A DNA stretch of 64,000 bases, taken from the sequence record OQ603353.1; one strand, 5' to 3'. The position numbers and the translations under genes are program-made. How positions within the stretch are numbered: position 1 is the stretch's first letter; each line of letters begins with the position of its first letter. Shown here in pieces: positions 19,229 to 28,888 of the stretch. Under the pieces are notes generated by a model that saw only the letters and a list, made by a program, of their open reading frames with translations, searched no databases and was not told the origin of the DNA.

Positions 19229-20356
19229 ATGCTCAAGTATGACAACGGGCTGGAATTGGACGTTACCATTGGTGGCGTCCAGCTTCCTGACAATGAGTTC
19301 TCGTTTCACCACCTGTCCCTAGTCAGTGACACTCGGTATTTCTTGCCGATGATGTTCATGCAGTTCGCTGACCAAGGCGACATTCTTCGGAAGGCTGGCG
19401 TTACCCTGTTTGACGCCGTACCCATTGTCATTAGCTTGGGCACTGGCGATCAGAAAAGGAACTACGAGTTCCGCCTCCACCGTCCTGAGCAAGTCACCAG
19501 CGGCAACCTGACCATCTACAAAATGAGCGGGTATCTAGATGCCCCCAAGTACCTAGCTGAGTCTCAGAACATTGGCTACACGGGTACTAGCTCTGAAATC
19601 ATCAGTCAAATCGGTGAACGTAGCGGCCTCACGCCACAGGTTGAGGATACCACCGACAACCAACGATGGTGGCAGGCCAACCGCCGCAATGCTGAGTTCG
19701 TTCGCTACATGGCCCAGCATGGATACAAGTCAGATGATTCCCTCATGTGTACGGGTGTGCGCTTCGACCGCTCCTTGCGATACATGGATCTAAACGCCAT
19801 CGAGCCGCGAGATATGTGGCTGAGTTACACAAAGATGGACCAAAACGTCGTTACAATCGTTGACCACCGATTTAACGATCCTATGGGTGGGAATAATTTG
19901 ATTAGGGGATACAGGAGTCGCACGGTAGATCAGAAGGTGAACACTCCCGACACTAACTACAACGACACCACCATCAATCCCCGTGCTTCTACCGTGAGTA
20001 TGAACCTGGACCTACAGTCTCAGATTCAGCGTGGCAAGGTCGAGTTCTCACCGCTGTACGCTCCGGGTCAGGTGCACGATAACTGGGCCAAGGCCCGCCA
20101 CCAAAACCTGCGCGGTCGCTACCTCAACAACTCGATCTGCGTTGCGCTGACCACTAACCAATCTAATCTGGACCTGTTTGATAGCGTCAAGATCGACAGT
20201 AGCTTGTCGATCCGAGACAACACTATCGGTGACGGCCAGAACAACAGCCGGGAAGGTCAGTACATCGTGGCAGGCAAGGAAATCATGCTTGTCGGTCGCA
20301 ACTACGGCGAGAAGATCAAACTGATGCGCGGCGGTATGAACGGAGAGAGTCAATGA
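19229..20356 (+). CDS. Baseplate hub protein (gp27/Mu gp44-like)
   Basis: 375 aa between the gp53-like and spike genes; TSSEIISQI, C-terminal GQYIVAGKEI hub pattern. Confidence 0.72.
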   Translation: MLKYDNGLELDVTIGGVQLPDNEFSFHHLSLVSDTRYFLPMMFMQFADQGDILRKAGVTLFDAVPIVISLGTGDQKRNYEFRLHRPEQVTSGNLTIYKMSGYLDAPKYLAESQNIGYTGTSSEIISQIGERSGLTPQVEDTTDNQRWWQANRRNAEFVRYMAQHGYKSDDSLMCTGVRFDRSLRYMDLNAIEPRDMWLSYTKMDQNVVTIVDHRFNDPMGGNNLIRGYRSRTVDQKVNTPDTNYNDTTINPRASTVSMNLDLQSQIQRGKVEFSPLYAPGQVHDNWAKARHQNLRGRYLNNSICVALTTNQSNLDLFDSVKIDSSLSIRDNTIGDGQNNSREGQYIVAGKEIMLVGRNYGEKIKLMRGGMNGESQ

Positions 20357-21090
20357 GTATCGGTATGGGCGTCCGTGAATCGGACAGCTACAAGGGCATT
20401 ATTTTCTATGGCAAGGTAGTGGACAACAATGACCCCGAACAGCTACGGCGTGTACGTGTCCATATCCCCGAGGTCTACGGTGATACCCCTCCCGAGGAAT
20501 TGCCGTGGGCCTTCCCCAAATGTCCTCCTAGCGGCACTGGCCAAAGTAGCACCTTCGGTAGCTACGGTGTGTTGGACGTAGACAGCGAAGTATGGGTGGA
20601 GTTCCAGCAAGGCGATCCCCACTTCCCTATGGTGATTGGCGTAGCCTTGCGCGCCGACCTTCGGAAGCAGACTGAGCTAGTCAACTATCCCCACCGCTAC
20701 GGCCTTGACGATTCCAAGGGTAACTGGATCATCGTTGACAAGCTGACAGGCGACGTGGAGATTGGCCACTTCTCTGATACCCGTGTTCGCATCGAGCCTA
20801 ACGGCAACCTGCACATCACTTCGGTAGCCAATCAAACGATCACGGTTGAACAGAATCAAGAGACCGAAATCAAGGGCAACGCTACAGTGCAGGTGAAAGG
20901 TAACGTCAACGTCACCGTGAACGGCAATGCGGAAATGAAGGTCGATGGGGCTATGAAGGCTAACATCGGTCAGAACCTCCAAGCTACTGTGGGTGGTAGT
21001 GCCACTGCCCAGGTTACTGGTCCTGCAACTATCAATTCAGCAGTCAAGATTTCGCTCAACGCACCAACGGTAAGTATCAACGGAGCATAA
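20353..21090 (+). CDS. Baseplate central spike (gp5/gpV-like OB-fold plus beta-helix)
   Basis: GKVVDNNDPEQLRRVRVHIP, VWVEFQQGDPHFP, then 8-residue V.GN repeats. Confidence 0.9.
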   Translation: MSIGMGVRESDSYKGIIFYGKVVDNNDPEQLRRVRVHIPEVYGDTPPEELPWAFPKCPPSGTGQSSTFGSYGVLDVDSEVWVEFQQGDPHFPMVIGVALRADLRKQTELVNYPHRYGLDDSKGNWIIVDKLTGDVEIGHFSDTRVRIEPNGNLHITSVANQTITVEQNQETEIKGNATVQVKGNVNVTVNGNAEMKVDGAMKANIGQNLQATVGGSATAQVTGPATINSAVKISLNAPTVSINGA

Positions 21091-21091
21091 G

Positions 21092-22024
21092 ATGGGAACG
21101 ATCACCATTTCAGTGACAGAGCCTTTGCCTACGTTCGACAGTCTGTATCAGGCAATGCTCCCGAATCTGACGTTCCCGCCAACCGGGTTCCAGTGGCCTC
21201 CCGCCCTCCCCGGCATCCCTACCATGTTCCCTTCTATCAGCTGCCCTAACATGAGTGGCGTCATGGCAATGGGCCAGCTGATGACCGAACAGCTGCTTAC
21301 GTCTGCGTTCATGATGATTAAGCCTATCTCGGAATTCCTAGGCTTGGCAATGTCTGCCATTCCCAAGATTCCCATCCTGAACATTGGCGTAGACCAGCTG
21401 CTAACTATGTCGGGTGACGATTTGATCGCGGCAGTAAAAGGCGCAATGCCTTCGCTACCCAATCTCTATTTCTCTCTCGACATACCGGACATCAACATCG
21501 TGCAGTGGCTGACGCAGCTGAAGTCTAGCTATCTAATGTCGCTAGCTGGATACTTGCAAAACATCATCAAGCAGGTGACAGACAAGATCAAAATTCCGGG
21601 CATGCCCACGTTGCCTACCATCCCCACGATGGAGGACGTGAAGCAAATGCTGATAGATCAGATTCCTCCTCCGATCAATGACCTTCGCAACGTTGACCTC
21701 AACGCGCTGTTGGCCAACATCAGCATCCCAGGCATCCCCTTCGATTTCTCGTTGCCATCGCCTTTTATCCCCAACATTTCGATGCCTGAGATTGATTTCA
21801 ACGAAATGATTTCGGGGCTGTACAATAGCATCGTCATGATGCCGATGAAGACAATGCAGGACTTCATCATGGACAAACTAAGTAGTGTGATTTCCCTCCA
21901 GCTGCCTACGCTGGTTTTGGTCATTCCCACTATTGAAATCCCCATTCCGGAAATCCCCATCCCTGTTATCCCGCCACTGCCTAGCATCCCGGACCTGCCT
22001 CCGCTCACCATTCGAGGCCCTTGA
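21092..22024 (+). CDS. Pro/Ile/Met-rich protein with three internal repeats, putative spike-tip protein
   Basis: 310 aa; directly after the spike where PAAR genes usually sit; repeats LP.P..P.IS.P.I plus amphipathic helix. Confidence 0.55.
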   Translation: MGTITISVTEPLPTFDSLYQAMLPNLTFPPTGFQWPPALPGIPTMFPSISCPNMSGVMAMGQLMTEQLLTSAFMMIKPISEFLGLAMSAIPKIPILNIGVDQLLTMSGDDLIAAVKGAMPSLPNLYFSLDIPDINIVQWLTQLKSSYLMSLAGYLQNIIKQVTDKIKIPGMPTLPTIPTMEDVKQMLIDQIPPPINDLRNVDLNALLANISIPGIPFDFSLPSPFIPNISMPEIDFNEMISGLYNSIVMMPMKTMQDFIMDKLSSVISLQLPTLVLVIPTIEIPIPEIPIPVIPPLPSIPDLPPLTIRGP

Positions 22025-22025
22025 A

Positions 22026-22967
22026 ATGCCTGTATCTAATCCACCTACCTTGTTGAGTGTCATTGCAGAGTTCGGAGGCCCTAACAATCTTGGGGCCTAT
22101 TACCGCAAAGGTCCATACGTACCTGACGGTCCTCCGCAGAATGCCAACATCAGTGATACGCCGGGCGGTCTTCGTCTCAGTCAGTTTGCGGGTGCGGTCA
22201 AGTACAATCTCAGTGCGTCCCTGAATCGCACGACCGCCAACACCAGTGGTAGTGGCAACAGCCAGTCGGGACGTGTCCTAACTCCACAGCTGATTGTTTA
22301 CCCCGTTAACGGCAGCGGCAACTACAGCTACTACTGGAACTACACCGCAGGCGTCCCTGTTAGCGGAAATACCAGTAGTACGTTCCAGCTGTACGCTGAT
22401 CTCAACAATGGTCAGAACATTTCTGGCAACGGTAACTGCGTGGTTACCGATAACGTCACTGGTCAGAATGCGATCCCTAGCTTTACGTTCTACCTAAGCT
22501 GGACGTATGAACGCCCACCCACCTGTGTTGTCATGGAAGCATACCTGCACGATGGAAAGCAGGCAGGCATGTACAACTCCAACGATCCTCTGCTGTTGGT
22601 CGATCCATACGCAAGGACTTCGGAGACGCTGAACATCGTAGATGCGCAGACCTTCACCCGAGAGTGTGTGACCTTGGTTACTGCCAATGGCTCACGCCTA
22701 ACGTGCTCCACCACTGCACCTATTCCAGTCAAAGCCGACTCGGAAACGCTGGTTCGTGCGGTGGATGCTCTAGGCCACCACGTTGCTACTACCACACGCC
22801 CTAACGACGTGATCCCATCGGTCACTTGGGATAAGGTAGTGCGTGTGCTGCCTGCTGGTGAGCGTGCTGTCCGCAATATCTACATCTACGACAAGTGCTT
22901 CTGGGCTTCGGATGACAATCGTTCGTTCATCCTCCATCACAACACGACTGGTAAGCAGATCATATGA
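22026..22967 (+). CDS. Fibre-tip adhesin A with C-terminal Hint (intein-like) domain
   Basis: ATG 22026; N-terminal SNPPTL.SV..EFGG docking domain; Hint from Cys 22524 (CVVMEAYL) to HHN 22943, followed by TTGKQII. Confidence 0.75.
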   Translation: MPVSNPPTLLSVIAEFGGPNNLGAYYRKGPYVPDGPPQNANISDTPGGLRLSQFAGAVKYNLSASLNRTTANTSGSGNSQSGRVLTPQLIVYPVNGSGNYSYYWNYTAGVPVSGNTSSTFQLYADLNNGQNISGNGNCVVTDNVTGQNAIPSFTFYLSWTYERPPTCVVMEAYLHDGKQAGMYNSNDPLLLVDPYARTSETLNIVDAQTFTRECVTLVTANGSRLTCSTTAPIPVKADSETLVRAVDALGHHVATTTRPNDVIPSVTWDKVVRVLPAGERAVRNIYIYDKCFWASDDNRSFILHHNTTGKQII

Positions 22968-23569
22968 TCGTCAACAAAGAACCACGCACCGCTACTCCGA
23001 TGAATTGGTTGCCTACGTACTACCTCAGTCGGATGTTTAACGCAGAAGAGTGCGCCACCATCATCAAGGAGTCAGAGGACTCCGGACTGTTTGTGCAAGG
23101 CCGCACCATTGGCGACAATAACGTGACTGTAACAGAGCAAGGCCGTCAGGTGGCCATTATCCGACTGGCTGGAGGTACGCTGTACGAAATGATGCGCCAA
23201 CGGATACTGGAACGGCTGCCTGACCTAAACTCCTGCTATCAGTTTGAACTGTTCGGCGCAGATGAAGTCTTCAAGGAAATCCATATCCTGAAGTACGTGG
23301 AAGGTAATTTCCACGGTGAACATTTGGACCTCGCCGGTTACGAGGAAATGTGCAACCGGAAGCTCAGCCTCATCGTCCAGTTGAATCCGGATTACGAGGG
23401 CGGTGAATTAGTCCTCTACAACTCTTATCCCGAGAAACCTCTGACCAATAGCAAGCAGGCTGGCGACGCAGTGGTGTTCCCTGCATGGATGCCGCACGAA
23501 GTAAGACCTGTTGACTACGGGACTAGATACGTTCTTGTGGTTTGGTTGCGAGGCCCTAAATTTAGATAG
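22964..23569 (+). CDS. 2OG-Fe(II) oxygenase (prolyl-hydroxylase-like), catalytic motifs intact
   Basis: HLD (HxD), RKLSLIVQL, YEGGEL, VFPAWMPHEV (distal His), GTRYVLV.W (2OG-binding Arg). Confidence 0.9.
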   Translation: MIVNKEPRTATPMNWLPTYYLSRMFNAEECATIIKESEDSGLFVQGRTIGDNNVTVTEQGRQVAIIRLAGGTLYEMMRQRILERLPDLNSCYQFELFGADEVFKEIHILKYVEGNFHGEHLDLAGYEEMCNRKLSLIVQLNPDYEGGELVLYNSYPEKPLTNSKQAGDAVVFPAWMPHEVRPVDYGTRYVLVVWLRGPKFR

Positions 23570-23579
23570 GGAGGTACTC

Positions 23580-24167
23580 ATGGCCGTATCAAACCCACCA
23601 ACATTGGTGAGCGTGCGTAACGAATTCGGTGGCAACGGAAATCTCCGTGCCTACACACGAGGCGGTGGCCTTGTTCCAGATGGGCCTGCGCAGAATGCGA
23701 ACATCAGCAAAACTCCGGACGGTTTGCGGCTTAGTCAATTTGCAGGAGCAACTAAAATCACTGCACAGTTGACCGACATTTATGCGCAGCAGTCCTACTA
23801 CGGACAATCGGGTCAAGACAACACTGCTTCTGCCACCATCCAGTTTAGTACCGATGGCAACATCTACTACACATGGGGTATGGGAGCTTTGCAGACGTAC
23901 CGATGGTTGGCTGGCGGTAATGCAAGTGATTTTGACGTAGAAGGATTTAATCAGCAGATCGCAGGTAACGGTCAAACCTCGGGCACGATGAATCGTCAGA
24001 ATTTGGGTGGTTCTCCCCGATGGTCATGTTCCGCTGCAACCCGATTTGGTTTTGTTGATTCTTCCATGTCATTTGGCTGCCGAATCTACCAAGCGGGTAC
24101 TGGTAACGTTATCGCTACAGCGAATTTCAGTATTTATGCCGCCGCCTCAGATGGTAGCATCGGATAG
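23580..24167 (+). CDS. Fibre-tip adhesin B (no Hint domain)
   Basis: ATG 23580 with GGGAGG RBS; first ~57 aa closely match the N-terminus of 22026. Confidence 0.75.
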   Translation: MAVSNPPTLVSVRNEFGGNGNLRAYTRGGGLVPDGPAQNANISKTPDGLRLSQFAGATKITAQLTDIYAQQSYYGQSGQDNTASATIQFSTDGNIYYTWGMGALQTYRWLAGGNASDFDVEGFNQQIAGNGQTSGTMNRQNLGGSPRWSCSAATRFGFVDSSMSFGCRIYQAGTGNVIATANFSIYAAASDGSIG

Positions 24168-24222
24168 CAACTCCATCTTCTAGTAACAACCAAAACGTTT
24201 GACACAACAAGGGAGAAGAAAC

Positions 24223-24900
24223 ATGTTCCAAGAAAGGGACCAAACTACAGCCAAATGGAATCCCCTCTGCCACGAACAGGTCAACTTGATTAACTCTTCG
24301 CTGATCGCGCGCCTCAAGGCGAAGGCAGATGAGTATCCGGTTAACCCTTACGGTTGTGGGTGGGATAACGGCGTTCCACTGGACCTTACTGCACCAACGG
24401 CCAGTGACGCGTCGCCAGAAGCTGCGTTGATTCACGACACCCGAACACTCATCGCAGAATGCGTCCACCGCCTAGCAGGCTTCTATCCATTCGATTTGTA
24501 TTTCAAGGATGCGGCCTTTGTTGTTCCTGCCCCACAACCTTCTTCGGTACGCTTAGTGCGACTCGCTATGGGTGCGAAGCTTAATCCGCCCCACGCTGGT
24601 ACGGCGGTTGCTCCCGGCGCCACGAATCGCATTGATCTGAATACGCATAGTCAGGCTCATCAGAAGATTCATATGATGATCCCGCTCTCTGCTTACGAAG
24701 GTAACGACGTGTTCTTCCCCTTCTTCGATCCGAACTTGCAGGAATGGAAAGACGTGTCGCCCACCATCACTAACGCACGGGCTGACTGGACAGGCATCAC
24801 GTTGTCATGGCCTGCGTGGCGGTTGTGTAGGTTCAGTCCCGTCGAGGACGGCGAAGCCTACCTCCTGCTAGTCACGTTGTACGGACCTCGCTTCCAGTAA
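24223..24900 (+). CDS. 2OG-Fe(II) oxygenase-like paralogue lacking catalytic residues
   Basis: Aligns to 22964 (YEG, WPAW, PV..G, L.V.L.GPRF) but HxD is PHAG, distal His is absent (WRLCRF), and the Arg is lost (EAYLL). Confidence 0.7.
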   Translation: MFQERDQTTAKWNPLCHEQVNLINSSLIARLKAKADEYPVNPYGCGWDNGVPLDLTAPTASDASPEAALIHDTRTLIAECVHRLAGFYPFDLYFKDAAFVVPAPQPSSVRLVRLAMGAKLNPPHAGTAVAPGATNRIDLNTHSQAHQKIHMMIPLSAYEGNDVFFPFFDPNLQEWKDVSPTITNARADWTGITLSWPAWRLCRFSPVEDGEAYLLLVTLYGPRFQ

Positions 24901-24926
24901 GTGCCCACATCTAATTCGGAACCAAC

Positions 24927-25331
24927 ATGGCAACCACCAACAACATCCTGTTTAGTGACTTCAACACGCTAGTCGGGTTGAATAACAAGCAAGCCATCGT
25001 CATCAATGATGATGCAGTTGCCAATGTGGTGCTCAACATTGTTCTGATCCAGAAGCGCAGCCGTAAGTTTCGGATTGGGTATGGAGCATCAAGTCACTTC
25101 TTCCTGCAAAAGCAGGTGACTGCTGAGAACGCGGAGAAGTACAGGATGACCCTCTACCAAGACCTGACCAAATGGGCCGGGTCTGTAGCCAAGTTTGATA
25201 TGGCGGGCATCCAAGTGAAGCCTCTCCAGAATTACGACGGTTACGGAGTGGTCATCCTGTACAAGTCCAACCTTTCGGGTTACTACAATCAGGTTTCAGT
25301 CCAGCTGCCGTCCACCTCGGTGGCACGCTAA
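24927..25331 (+). CDS. Baseplate wedge subunit gp25-like
   Basis: 134 aa; DAVANVVLNIVL...SRKFRIGYGAS gp25/gpW-like pattern; upstream of gp6-like gene. Confidence 0.75.
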   Translation: MATTNNILFSDFNTLVGLNNKQAIVINDDAVANVVLNIVLIQKRSRKFRIGYGASSHFFLQKQVTAENAEKYRMTLYQDLTKWAGSVAKFDMAGIQVKPLQNYDGYGVVILYKSNLSGYYNQVSVQLPSTSVAR

Positions 25332-25404
25332 TACCGAAAATAGGGCCAAAATAGGCCCACAGCACCCTACCCACAGGGCGCCAAATTTAGAGGCTCCAGC
25401 TTCC

Positions 25405-25452
25405 ATCTACGACCCCAATCCTTGCGTCAAAACGCATAGTTGGGGCGTAGAT
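25405..25452 (+). promoter_or_regulatory. Nested stem-loop in the gp25-gp6 intergenic leader
   Basis: ATCTACG(A)CCCCAA pairs with TTGGGGCGTAGAT (13 bp, 1 bulge) and encloses TGCGT-CAAA-ACGCA. Confidence 0.55.
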
Positions 25453-25514
25453 TTTGGCTACATTTTCCACTCCCCAACCCTCATTTTCCTATGGCCACTG
25501 ACCGGAATTCAACC

Positions 25515-27272
25515 ATGACAACTGTAACCGCGTTGTCCAATATCCGCCCTGACTTCGATGACATTGCAGCACAGCTGGGATCGAGTCTGACGCGCAAGGC
25601 GAACTGGGCTCCGCTGCTTCCTACTCAGACTGCAAGCCTCTTGATTGAAGGCGTGGCCGCCGCCACTGCGTTCCTGCAAACCGGTGTGCAGAACAGCTTT
25701 GAAGAAACGTTCCCTCAGACCGCCCGTATGCCTTCGAGCCTGCGGGCGTCTGCGCGTCGGCTCGGTGTCCGTCTGACGCGCAAGTCCCCTGCACAGACTC
25801 GGGTACGGCTCACGCGAGCCACCGCAGCCACGTCCGTCCTGATCCCTGAGTTCTCGGCCTTCCAAGCGCCGGGTGTGTCTCTGTTCAACCGCTCTGCCAT
25901 ACTGTTCCCCGTCGGTACCCTCTCCGCTGAATTCGACTTGTACGAAGGCTTTATCACTCAGGTTTCGTACACGGGTCAAGGTGCTGACAGTCAGATGATC
26001 GTTGTATCTGTCCCCGGCTTCACCATCAGCAACATGGACGTGCGGGTCACTGTCAGTGGCCGTCCGCTGCAAGTGGTGACTGATGGCATCTGGCACTACC
26101 CCATCACGAACAGTGGCGATCCTAACTACGTGGTATCGGACAACACGCTGCCTACGGGCGAGCTTCTGCTTGAGTTCGGTAACACTCAGTTCGGCATGAT
26201 CCCTCAGCGTGGTGCGCAGATTCTTGTGTCCTATGCTGTGACCAATGGTACCTCCGGCAACAACGTACAGTTTGAGAATCAGCGCATCACGTACTCGGCC
26301 AACGGTGTTGAGTTCACTGGCAGCGCGCTTACTCCACTCACCGGAGGTACTGACGAACTTGACGCAGAGCAGTACCGCGATAGTCCGTTGATCTACGCGT
26401 CCTACGAGCGCGCGGTTGCTATTCCAGACATGCCTGCTATTGCTACGAAGTATCCCGGCGTTGTCGATGCCATCTTCCTTGGTCAGAAGGACATTGCTCC
26501 GAACCTCAAGGAATTCATGAACGTCGTCTACACTTACGTTCTGATGGATACGGGTTCTCAGATTTCTGCTGCGCAGTACACGGACTTCCTCAAGTGGTGG
26601 CAGCCGCGCTCGATGCCTCTTGAATACGTCCGCCAAACCGCCAAGCAGATTGCAGTGGACGTTGCAGGCACCATCTACATCACGGGTCAGGGCGATCCGG
26701 ATTCCATCTTGGCCAAGGCGCGCGCAGCAGTTGCCAAACTGTTCACTGCACGCCAAGGTTACTTGGGTCGCGATCTGTACGTGGACGACCTTATTGACTC
26801 CATCCGTACTTCGGACCCTTACGTTGACCACGTTACCCTGACTTCACCCACCGCTGACGTTATCTGTAAGATCAACGCACCGCAGGCCCCTACTGTTACC
26901 CCGGCTACTGGCGGTACGCTCCCCAACGGTACGTACATCTATTCGGTGTCTGCTGTCTCCAATCTCAGCCCTGTGCAAGAAACGTTCGCTTCGGTGAATG
27001 GTGCGGTGACGCTGACGGGAACGAACAACGCCGCACGTATCAAGTGGAATGCAGTGGCAGGTGCTGTGCAATACAAGGTGTACGGGCGCACTGCTTCCCA
27101 AGAAATGTTCCTTCTGGCCACGGTCAGCGCATCTTCTGCGCTTGAATTCTTGGACACGGGTTCTGTTACTACTGGCGCTGCTGTCAACAAGATCAACACT
27201 GCGGGTATCTCTTACGTTACCCTCAACAATACGAACTTGCAGGTGGCGTTCACTGATCGAGTAGGTGTCTGA
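25515..27272 (+). CDS. Baseplate wedge protein gp6/gpJ-like with Fn3-like insertion near the C-terminus
   Basis: ETFPQTARMPSSL, LLEFGN..FGMIP, GGTDE.D.EQYR, ERAV..D motifs. Start could be 25491 or 25515. Confidence 0.88.
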   Translation: MTTVTALSNIRPDFDDIAAQLGSSLTRKANWAPLLPTQTASLLIEGVAAATAFLQTGVQNSFEETFPQTARMPSSLRASARRLGVRLTRKSPAQTRVRLTRATAATSVLIPEFSAFQAPGVSLFNRSAILFPVGTLSAEFDLYEGFITQVSYTGQGADSQMIVVSVPGFTISNMDVRVTVSGRPLQVVTDGIWHYPITNSGDPNYVVSDNTLPTGELLLEFGNTQFGMIPQRGAQILVSYAVTNGTSGNNVQFENQRITYSANGVEFTGSALTPLTGGTDELDAEQYRDSPLIYASYERAVAIPDMPAIATKYPGVVDAIFLGQKDIAPNLKEFMNVVYTYVLMDTGSQISAAQYTDFLKWWQPRSMPLEYVRQTAKQIAVDVAGTIYITGQGDPDSILAKARAAVAKLFTARQGYLGRDLYVDDLIDSIRTSDPYVDHVTLTSPTADVICKINAPQAPTVTPATGGTLPNGTYIYSVSAVSNLSPVQETFASVNGAVTLTGTNNAARIKWNAVAGAVQYKVYGRTASQEMFLLATVSASSALEFLDTGSVTTGAAVNKINTAGISYVTLNNTNLQVAFTDRVGV

Positions 27273-28888
27273 TGACTATCTATAACGGCGATGATCCGAA
27301 TATCTCGTTGCCTAATGCTTCATCCATCAACCCACTAATCACCTACGGCTTCCATCAAGTCTACGGCAAGATGGACGGGAATGGCGTTGTTGTGGATACG
27401 ATGGGCATCATGCTGCCAGAAGGTTTCCGTGATATTGAGGTGTGGCGAGACTTCGCTGATAGCGTCGATGAGATAATGAACAGCGAGATTGCAACGCAGA
27501 TCGAAAGCCTGATGAGCACGAACGACCCGTATGCGTCTTCGGTGAATCCTGCTATCGACCGCCGTACCCTCCTGTACCTCATTGGTGCAATCGGATTCAA
27601 GTACAAGCAAAACGACGTGTTTGACATTGATGATTTGAAGCGGTTCGTTCGGCATACTCCGCAATTTTGGGGTGAGAAGGGCAACCGCTTCTTCATTCAG
27701 TACATGAGCTATGTCGTTAACGCCCAGCTTCAAATGCAATACCTGTGGACGCAGGACTACAAGGTGTTCGTCCCCGAGGGTAGTCCACTGATTGGTCGCC
27801 CTGTATGGGAGTCCGCAGTAAATGCCACTGCCAACGTGGTCCCCTTCGGTACAGGCGATGGTGCTCAGACTGTGTTCCCCCTGATGGTGATGAACTCCAC
27901 CATCGACAGCGTTTCGGGAACCCCTACGATCTACCGCGTTGACTGGGCAGGGCAAACGCGCCTATACAACACGCCACGCACCAACCGCATTAGGCGTAGT
28001 GTTGAAATCGGTAGTTCTGCTTGGTACAACGATAATCCCACCAACCTGATTGTGCAGACCACTTCGGCGTCGGCACCTGACGGTAGCGCGACTGCCAGCG
28101 TGCTCAAACCTATGACTACCGGCGCTAACGCAGGCTCGCTTCTTGATGGTAGCGCAGTGACGCCCGGCCCTGTGACCTGTAGCGTTTATCAATCCTCCGA
28201 GGGATTGACCGCAGGACAGAAGGTTCGGTACGCTCTGTGGAGTGTGGACTCAAGCAACGTTATCAGTCTAGTGGGCCAAACGGATTTGGAATGGACGGGC
28301 ACTCAGATGCGCGTGGCCGCATACAGTGGTCTTGCCTCCAGTGTCCTGCAATCCTTGGGTGATGGTTGGTATCGCATTGAGTACACGGGTACGACTGGCG
28401 TTGGTGCTCGACTCTCTATCCAGCCCGGCCTAACCCACACCAATCCTGTTACGGTGTGGGGCGCTCAGTTGGAGCAGGGTAGCTCTGCGACTCGCCTCAT
28501 CAAGACCTACGGCGTTGAAGTAACCACCACGGATTTCGCCTTTACCAACAATAATCGGAGTATCACCCTGTCTTCGCCGCTCCCCGTTGGCGCGAGCCTC
28601 AGCTGGAGCGGAACGTACAATCAGGCAGGCACTTGGTATCCAACAAGTCACGTATACATCGTCTACGACGTTGATAAGTTCCGAGGCTCAGTCTCGAATA
28701 ATTTCAATAGTCAAGACAGCTTGGCTGCATTTTTCTACACCATCGCTCCAATTGAACTGGTAATCCAGTCCTTCGTGCTCAACGTCAACTTTGATCCTAC
28801 GGTTCTACAGTTGGCAGGTGACGTGCAGATTAGCGTATATACGCCGATGGAAGTGGAAGCTATTACTCCGATGAACACTAGGGCTTGA
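27272..28888 (+). CDS. Baseplate wedge protein gp7/gpI-like with carbohydrate-binding-like insert
   Basis: LLYLIGAIGF..FWGEKGNRFFI wedge motif; FGTGDGAQTVFPL; insert with GDGWYRI..WGAQLEQGSSAT (27980-28507). Confidence 0.7.
   Translation: MTIYNGDDPNISLPNASSINPLITYGFHQVYGKMDGNGVVVDTMGIMLPEGFRDIEVWRDFADSVDEIMNSEIATQIESLMSTNDPYASSVNPAIDRRTLLYLIGAIGFKYKQNDVFDIDDLKRFVRHTPQFWGEKGNRFFIQYMSYVVNAQLQMQYLWTQDYKVFVPEGSPLIGRPVWESAVNATANVVPFGTGDGAQTVFPLMVMNSTIDSVSGTPTIYRVDWAGQTRLYNTPRTNRIRRSVEIGSSAWYNDNPTNLIVQTTSASAPDGSATASVLKPMTTGANAGSLLDGSAVTPGPVTCSVYQSSEGLTAGQKVRYALWSVDSSNVISLVGQTDLEWTGTQMRVAAYSGLASSVLQSLGDGWYRIEYTGTTGVGARLSIQPGLTHTNPVTVWGAQLEQGSSATRLIKTYGVEVTTTDFAFTNNNRSITLSSPLPVGASLSWSGTYNQAGTWYPTSHVYIVYDVDKFRGSVSNNFNSQDSLAAFFYTIAPIELVIQSFVLNVNFDPTVLQLAGDVQISVYTPMEVEAITPMNTRA

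Follow-up and report, generated by a model that had tools for sequence, protein, structure and literature searches.

Phage 2-oxoglutarate (2OG) oxygenases are abundant and, to our knowledge, substrates are known for almost none of them. We analyzed a 64,000-nucleotide stretch of DNA (the window) belonging to sequence record OQ603353, the 227 kb genome of Xanthomonas jumbo phage Ep026. Within its baseplate operon this phage encodes an intact 2OG-Fe(II) oxygenase of 201 aa and a non-catalytic paralogue of 225 aa, beside two small proteins (tip proteins A and B), and a third oxygenase-fold paralogue (210 aa) is encoded at the same locus in the related phage PhiXhv-15. By sequence, the closest solved relatives of the 201-aa protein are the PKHD-type Fe2+-dependent dioxygenases PiuC/YbiX (PDB 9ghl, 9qn0-4, 3dkq; match to PiuC, E = 6.5e-6), with which it has the same invariant Y/H/D/H/R set in common, although it lacks the PKHD C-terminal helical extension, is encoded in a phage baseplate operon and falls far below the equivalog cut-off for YbiX/PiuC (NCBIfam PRK05467; best 57.4 vs 143 bits).

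Prolyl 4-hydroxylase (P4H)-type enzymes hydroxylate proteins, clamping the substrate by an extended peptide. The protein prolyl hydroxylases PBCV-1 vCPH (5c5t), Pseudomonas PPHD-EF-Tu (4iw3), B. anthracis P4H (3itq/5hv0) and human P3H1 (8k0f) were the top matches of a structural model of the 225-aa protein; they have their Pfam clan in common with the active copy and are the source of the peptide-clamping analogy drawn below, but sequence identity is only 8-16% and three of the four catalytic residues are missing from the dead copies. Tail-fibre assembly chaperones and tip adhesins (Tfa of lambda, Mu and P2, gp38 of T4 and T2) are encoded just downstream of fibre genes. The Ep026 locus is similar in that a small gene of the same operon comes after each tip-protein gene (an ATGA overlap after A, a 55 nt gap after B), but the oxygenase-fold proteins have no sequence or fold relation to Tfa or gp38 and gave no match to a chaperone family in Pfam or PHROG, and we know of no chaperone with a double-stranded beta-helix (DSBH) fold. 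Eukaryotes have catalytically inactive paralogues of 2OG/JmjC oxygenases (pseudoenzymes), which the dead copies appear to resemble in the loss of metal and 2OG ligands from a fold kept under purifying selection with an active paralogue alongside, although the two belong to unrelated lineages and contexts. Among phage homologues, those nearest to the active copy are the cyanophage 2OG-Fe(II) oxygenases (phrog_61; ~30% identity over 90% of the length), which are present in several copies per genome (PMC3037559) but adjoin DNA helicase or auxiliary metabolic genes and lie outside the baseplate operon. We found no account in the literature of a phage baseplate operon that contains catalytically dead paralogues of a 2OG oxygenase; papers on the PhiXhv phages did not mention the oxygenase or the module, and Ep026 was absent from the literature found.

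The 201-aa protein matched the Pfam family 2OG-FeII_Oxy_3 (PF13640) with 57.7 bits (cut-off 27; E = 2.4e-15) and phrog_61 with an E-value of 4.5e-28, the latter placed by PHROG in the category of moron/auxiliary metabolic genes. Its best cellular homologues displayed ~40% identity over the DSBH core. In a family alignment of the 201-aa protein and ten of these homologues (PKHD-type hydroxylases), Y111, H120, D122, H178 and R188 were all invariant columns. The protein is catalytically complete by motif, and Fe(II)/2OG turnover is predicted. The gene adds one more unremarkable member to a very large family.

The 225-aa protein, judged by direct comparison of the two sequences, is a genuine, if distant, paralogue of the 201-aa oxygenase. 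BLASTP gave 23% identity over 160 aa (E = 5e-6) and the Smith-Waterman score was 75 compared to 29.6 ± 4.4 in shuffles (z = 10.3), with none of 1000 shuffles reaching 75; control comparisons against the tip proteins gave z < 1. An earlier reading of this DNA from its letters (the sequence-only reading) had held that the second copy lost the HxD motif, the distal His and the 2OG-binding Arg. Three independent alignments agreed that the Asp is replaced by Gly126, the distal His by Cys202 and the Arg by Ala212, whereas the first His (H124) is kept, leaving HxG in place of HxD. The 225-aa protein is therefore without three of the four key catalytic residues. The C-termini of the active copy (GTRYVLVVWLRGPKFR, in a chain ending ...GPKFR) and of the 225-aa protein (GEAYLLLVTLYGPRFQ) both fit the motif G.[RA]Y.L.V.L.GP[KR]F quoted in that reading, and the two open reading frames (ORFs) it had called lie where it placed them, with identical bounds in the GenBank annotation of sister phages.

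Outside this pairwise relationship the 225-aa protein stood almost alone. There was no Pfam match even at E = 10 and no PHROG or NCBIfam match, and both a word-indexed search of 5.8 billion proteins and an exhaustive phmmer search over 1.84 billion representatives returned only the protein itself, with no others found in IMG/VR. Likewise, the 210-aa protein was absent from the protein collection searched and had no relatives in IMG/VR or JGI metagenomes, and a profile of the three paralogues had no matches in IMG/VR. The dead copies have no homologue detectable by these searches beyond the Ep026/PhiXhv clade. The sole other match of the 225-aa protein was P0006, a 1476-aa NHL/beta-helix surface repeat protein whose fn3-like repeats weakly matched residues 13-78 (E = 1.4e-4 over five repeats); P0006 was judged probably a chance match, the five repeats inflating the E-value.

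Structural modeling was consistent with a DSBH fold for the 225-aa protein. An AF2 model built with an alignment including the active copy and PKHD relatives, an alignment that itself supplies this fold, reached a predicted local distance difference test score (pLDDT) of 61 and a predicted template modeling score (pTM) of 0.68, with the lowest confidence in the HxD region and a lineage-specific insertion. Foldseek placed protein prolyl hydroxylases and PiuC as the best matches of this model in the PDB (template modeling score ~0.5), and phage and giant-virus 2OG oxygenases as the best matches in BFVD.

All genes of the module were intact in each of the five genomes compared. The ATG start of the 225-aa gene is preceded by AAGGGAGA, a good ribosome-binding site, in agreement with the sequence-only reading. 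Compared to the window, the PhiXhv-12/-16 allele of this gene carried 9 synonymous and 6 non-synonymous nucleotide differences, resulting in 4 amino-acid changes, all of them in the N-terminal half and outside the beta-core. The ratio of non-synonymous to synonymous change (omega), estimated from 15 substitutions between two haplotypes only, was ~0.14-0.2 (binomial P = 0.0006-0.003 against neutrality). Neither the neutral decay nor the frameshifts that the sequence-only reading had named as contrary evidence were found among the homologues. As the gene is intact and under purifying selection, its product is a pseudoenzyme rather than the relic of a decaying pseudogene.

The third paralogue is encoded by 667 extra bases in PhiXhv-15, between the gene for a 310-aa protein and that of tip protein A. 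Its product of 210 aa displayed 23% identity to the active oxygenase over 152 residues (E = 9e-5; z = 7.0). The first His is again kept, with Ser, Gly and Met at the positions of the Asp, distal His and Arg, and the C-terminal segment is of the same kind as in the other two proteins; all three paralogues agree at a set of columns to which the first His and the C-terminal segment Y.L.V..GP.F belong. Similarity between the 225-aa and 210-aa dead copies was undetectable (z = 0.3), and they therefore diverged independently from an oxygenase-like ancestor. The extra gene marks a recombination junction, a diverged tract ending and a near-identical tract beginning precisely there. On the upstream side, the tract from the hub gene to the 310-aa gene is diverged, with 48 synonymous and 7 non-synonymous differences from the window in the 310-aa gene, and on the downstream side the sequence from tip protein A to the W-like gene matches the window save for one synonymous difference in tip protein B. 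This pattern of differences indicates recombination with an unsampled relative at the insertion site. Further downstream, the gene for a 538-aa protein that follows the J-like gene carries 101 synonymous and 24 non-synonymous differences in PhiXhv-15 with nearly identical flanks, and this is a second mosaic tract, in a probable receptor-binding gene.

Tip proteins A and B displayed 47% identity over 146 aa, with similarity significant only in the first ~60 residues (z = 0.46 beyond). The N-terminal domain (N-domain) that they have in common consists of 57 residues with 26 invariant columns across five sequences. A hidden Markov model (HMM) of this domain detected ~15 distinct loci besides those of the clade itself (among them L003, L009, L011-L015, L018, L019 and L021-L023), often with two copies per genome and including a siphovirus-like contig (L009) as well as jumbo myoviruses; none was found in the bacterial genomes scanned. 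The N-domain corresponds to no Pfam family and starts small proteins encoded directly after tail-fibre genes in very different phages. It begins at or beside the stop of a long fibre gene in IMG/VR contigs, and in the Xanthomonas jumbo phages LucasX and RTH11 it follows closely on giant tail-fibre genes. A common docking function is likely for this domain. Beyond the N-domain, the C-terminal 163 aa of A weakly resembled (32% identity, E = 5e-4) the extreme C-terminus of 'VlrC' from Stenotrophomonas phage DLP_6, in which two consecutive giant fibre-like proteins of that name were matched. Because the N-domain adjoins fibre genes elsewhere and the C-terminus of A resembles the VlrC tip, we infer that A and B may be tail-tip or receptor-binding proteins. 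An orthologue of A with 56% identity was found in L021, represented by contigs of ~2 kb, and one of B (P0003, 68% identity) in L003. Searching the PDB with a profile of the tip-protein alignment returned no match. Recent gene conversion between A and B was considered and rejected: the N-domain DNA is only ~65-77% identical and synonymous sites look saturated. The GC content at third codon positions (GC3) of tip protein B is 0.47, compared to 0.59-0.68 for every neighboring gene.

The five genes form the central part of a baseplate operon of single orientation and lie between a spike gene and a gp25/W-like wedge gene, which are the upstream and downstream edges of a segment that varies among relatives (Table 1). 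They run in the order of the Pro-rich 310-aa protein, tip protein A, the oxygenase, tip protein B and the 225-aa protein, separated by gaps of 1, -4 (the ATGA overlap of the oxygenase start with the stop of tip protein A), 10 and 55 nt, with a further 26 nt to the gp25/W-like gene. Fibre-like proteins are encoded downstream of the gp6/J-like gene. Neither promoter-like and terminator-like sites nor flanking repeats or promoter/terminator pairs, the marks of an inserted mobile cassette, exceeded shuffle or chance expectation in the region. The 310-aa protein had zero Pfam, PHROG or NCBIfam matches and its C-terminus is rich in Ile/Leu-Pro repeats; its gene is kept in relatives and always directly precedes the first N-domain gene, with the spike gene on its other side. 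Over positions 20000-26000 the window displayed 100% identity to Ep026 and to the record of Erwinia phage Ep032, and 98.5-99.6% identity to the Xanthomonas hortorum phages PhiXhv-12, -15 and -16. The Ep032 record (OQ603359; Erwinia sp. YA1) is thus the same as that of Ep026 (Xanthomonas sp. Q) over this 6-kb baseplate/tip region with hosts in different genera, and it is flagged UNVERIFIED.

Table 1. Genes and sequence features of the baseplate region, in window coordinates except where another record is named.
Feature	Coordinates	Strand	Matches and remarks
Hub-like protein	19229-20356		
Baseplate central spike, gpV/gp5-like	20353..21090	+	Pfam Phage_base_V 9.6e-12, Gp5_trimer_C 2.5e-8; phrog_430 baseplate hub/tail lysozyme 5.9e-29
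Hydrophobic Pro-rich protein, 310 aa	21092..22024	+	69% identity to 307-aa protein of L003; present in L021
Third oxygenase-fold paralogue, 210 aa (PhiXhv-15)	L001:6043-6675		Insertion point at window 22025/22026
Tip protein A ('adhesin A'), 313 aa	22026..22967	+	57-aa N-domain (HMM 2.3e-37), then unique body
N-domain of A	22026-22196		
C-terminal 163 aa of A	22476-22964		Weak resemblance to VlrC of DLP_6 (L020:5001-5426)
2OG-Fe(II) oxygenase, P4H/PKHD-type, 201 aa	22964..23569	+	Full catalytic set by motif; PF13640; phrog_61
Tip protein B ('adhesin B'), 195 aa	23580..24167	+	N-domain as in A; C-terminal part unrelated to A
N-domain of B	23580-23750		
Non-catalytic oxygenase paralogue, 225 aa	24223..24900	+	Pairwise homology to 201-aa protein
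Residues 13-78 of 225-aa protein	24259-24456		Weak match to P0006, probably chance
gp25/W-like baseplate wedge protein	24927..25331	+	phrog_261 baseplate wedge subunit 1.5e-4; 56% identity to 131-aa protein of L003
gp6/J-like baseplate wedge protein	25491..27272	+	phrog_219 1.5e-39; labelled 'baseplate protein' in PhiXhv phages
538-aa protein	27272-28888		Second mosaic tract in PhiXhv-15

The arrangement had been described as a tandem duplication of an adhesin and oxygenase module. The oxygenase-fold genes are indeed paralogous and the two N-domains are old paralogues, but duplication of the two genes as a single unit was not supported: A and B have only the N-domain in common, L003 has two such genes and no oxygenase-like gene, the third paralogue comes without an adhesin of its own, and N-domain loci outside the clade lack an oxygenase-like gene. 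The sequences compared are better described as a variable segment where genes of both kinds, N-domain and oxygenase-fold, were each multiplied and where their pairing is specific to this clade.

For the function of the oxygenase-fold genes, we hold tentatively, at somewhat short of an even chance, to a reading in which the active copy would hydroxylate a late structural protein and the dead copies would act by binding. The overlap of its stop codon with the oxygenase start makes tip protein A the first candidate substrate. The dead copies may retain the peptide-binding surface of P4H-type enzymes without catalysis, and could use it to bind the neighboring tip proteins, with a part in assembly (chaperone or adaptor) or in the tip itself (minor subunit); a binding, chaperone or structural role for the dead copy, as the sequence-only reading had proposed, is plausible by this analogy. 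A narrower version, a dedicated baseplate hydroxylation system in which the active enzyme modifies a receptor-binding tip protein and the derived dead paralogues are peptide-clamping chaperones or tip subunits, is improbable as a whole. Several observations weigh against our preferred reading. The physical or enzymatic tie of the oxygenase-fold proteins to the tip proteins is one that we infer. In L003, syntenic across the whole baseplate with 40-69% amino-acid identity, the interval from the 307-aa gene to the W-like gene contains only two N-domain genes in tandem, one of them the orthologue of B (68%), and no oxygenase-like gene; such tip proteins are therefore not generally dependent on an oxygenase-fold partner. 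No oxygenase-like ORF was present within ~5 kb of the ~15 distinct N-domain loci outside the clade, the third paralogue of PhiXhv-15 has no preceding adhesin gene of its own, and the closest phage homologues of the active enzyme, in cyanophages, adjoin the uvsW DNA helicase gene and lie outside the tail genes. The small number of substitutions and haplotypes behind the omega estimate counts on the same side. Comparison by hhalign of the PKHD family profile with the dead copies was weak or null, with only the last 29 C-terminal columns of the 225-aa protein aligned (E = 0.017), and the claim of homology therefore rests on the pairwise comparison with the neighboring gene. AF2 modeling of the 225-aa protein from its single sequence gave a pLDDT of 31 and no usable model, and the evidence for its fold is partly circular because the PKHD family alignment supplies the fold.

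The same absences could be explained if the oxygenase-fold genes were accessory genes that had landed in a gap of the baseplate operon prone to recombination, with no role in the tail. The active enzyme would then act on a host substrate, a nucleic acid or a small molecule, an assumption also made for cyanophage 2OG oxygenases, and the dead copies would have taken an unrelated non-catalytic role. We consider this hotspot explanation unlikely, though the main competitor. The lack of oxygenase-fold genes in syntenic L003, the consistent lack of an oxygenase beside N-domain loci elsewhere, the uvsW neighborhood of the cyanophage homologues and the PHROG category of the family all fit it, as does a presence/absence polymorphism among phages otherwise 98.5-100% identical, in which the extra gene of PhiXhv-15 directly borders a diverged tract (the 310-aa gene has 48 synonymous and 7 non-synonymous differences, tip protein A has 0). 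It accounts less readily for the retention of all three paralogues within one structural operon, the overlap of the oxygenase start with the stop of tip protein A, the match in GC and GC3 of the oxygenase-fold genes to neighboring structural genes, and the lack of the flanking repeats or promoter/terminator pairs typical of inserted accessory genes. Two further explanations concern the 225-aa protein, and we consider both very improbable. It could still be an enzyme that uses alternative ligands (e.g., His124, Cys202 and another carboxylate) or a different cofactor: the first His is present in both dead copies, Cys is capable of binding metal, and one alignment brings Asp135 into line with the catalytic Asp, which requires a 9-residue insertion. 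The H-A-G sequence also recalls the HxG/A motif known from Fe/2OG halogenases, but the distal His and 2OG-binding Arg, which halogenases and hydroxylases alike need, are replaced, and the halogenase assignment was rejected. At these two positions the third paralogue carries Gly and Met, so no alternative site is conserved; in addition, the HxD region and the insertion are the parts modeled with lowest confidence, and the failure to match Pfam at even the most permissive E-value used is a further argument against retained catalysis. Equally doubtful is that the 225-aa ORF is a recent pseudogene, open by chance or unexpressed. No homologue is detectable outside the clade, the gene has the top substitution density in the module (15/678 nt), and its non-synonymous share is above that of its neighbors (6:9 vs 7:59 non-synonymous to synonymous differences; Fisher P = 0.012), indicating weaker constraint. 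The ORF is nevertheless unbroken in all five genomes, even in an allele that has diverged by 2.2%, with an omega significantly below 1 and a good ribosome-binding site, and it is still open at 23% identity to its paralogue, hence over a long time.

The observation itself is solid, the set of candidates is small and checkable, and the genes are limited to one narrow clade. An intact enzyme and dead paralogues within one late structural operon, with a start overlapping a putative receptor-binding gene, leave few candidate substrates for a phage 2OG oxygenase, in phages of the PhiXhv type that are under study for Xanthomonas biocontrol. If the dead copies do not bind the tip proteins, the locus would be a clear case of a variable segment of a baseplate operon with presence/absence among near-identical phages. 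If they do bind them, an enzyme fold would have been turned into a structural or assembly part of the phage tail. Should the full hydroxylation system exist, which we regard as improbable, it would be the first oxygen- and 2OG-dependent modification of a phage receptor-binding apparatus and would represent recruitment of the DSBH enzyme fold into the adsorption apparatus, with the first hydroxylase-derived pseudoenzyme in a phage tail.

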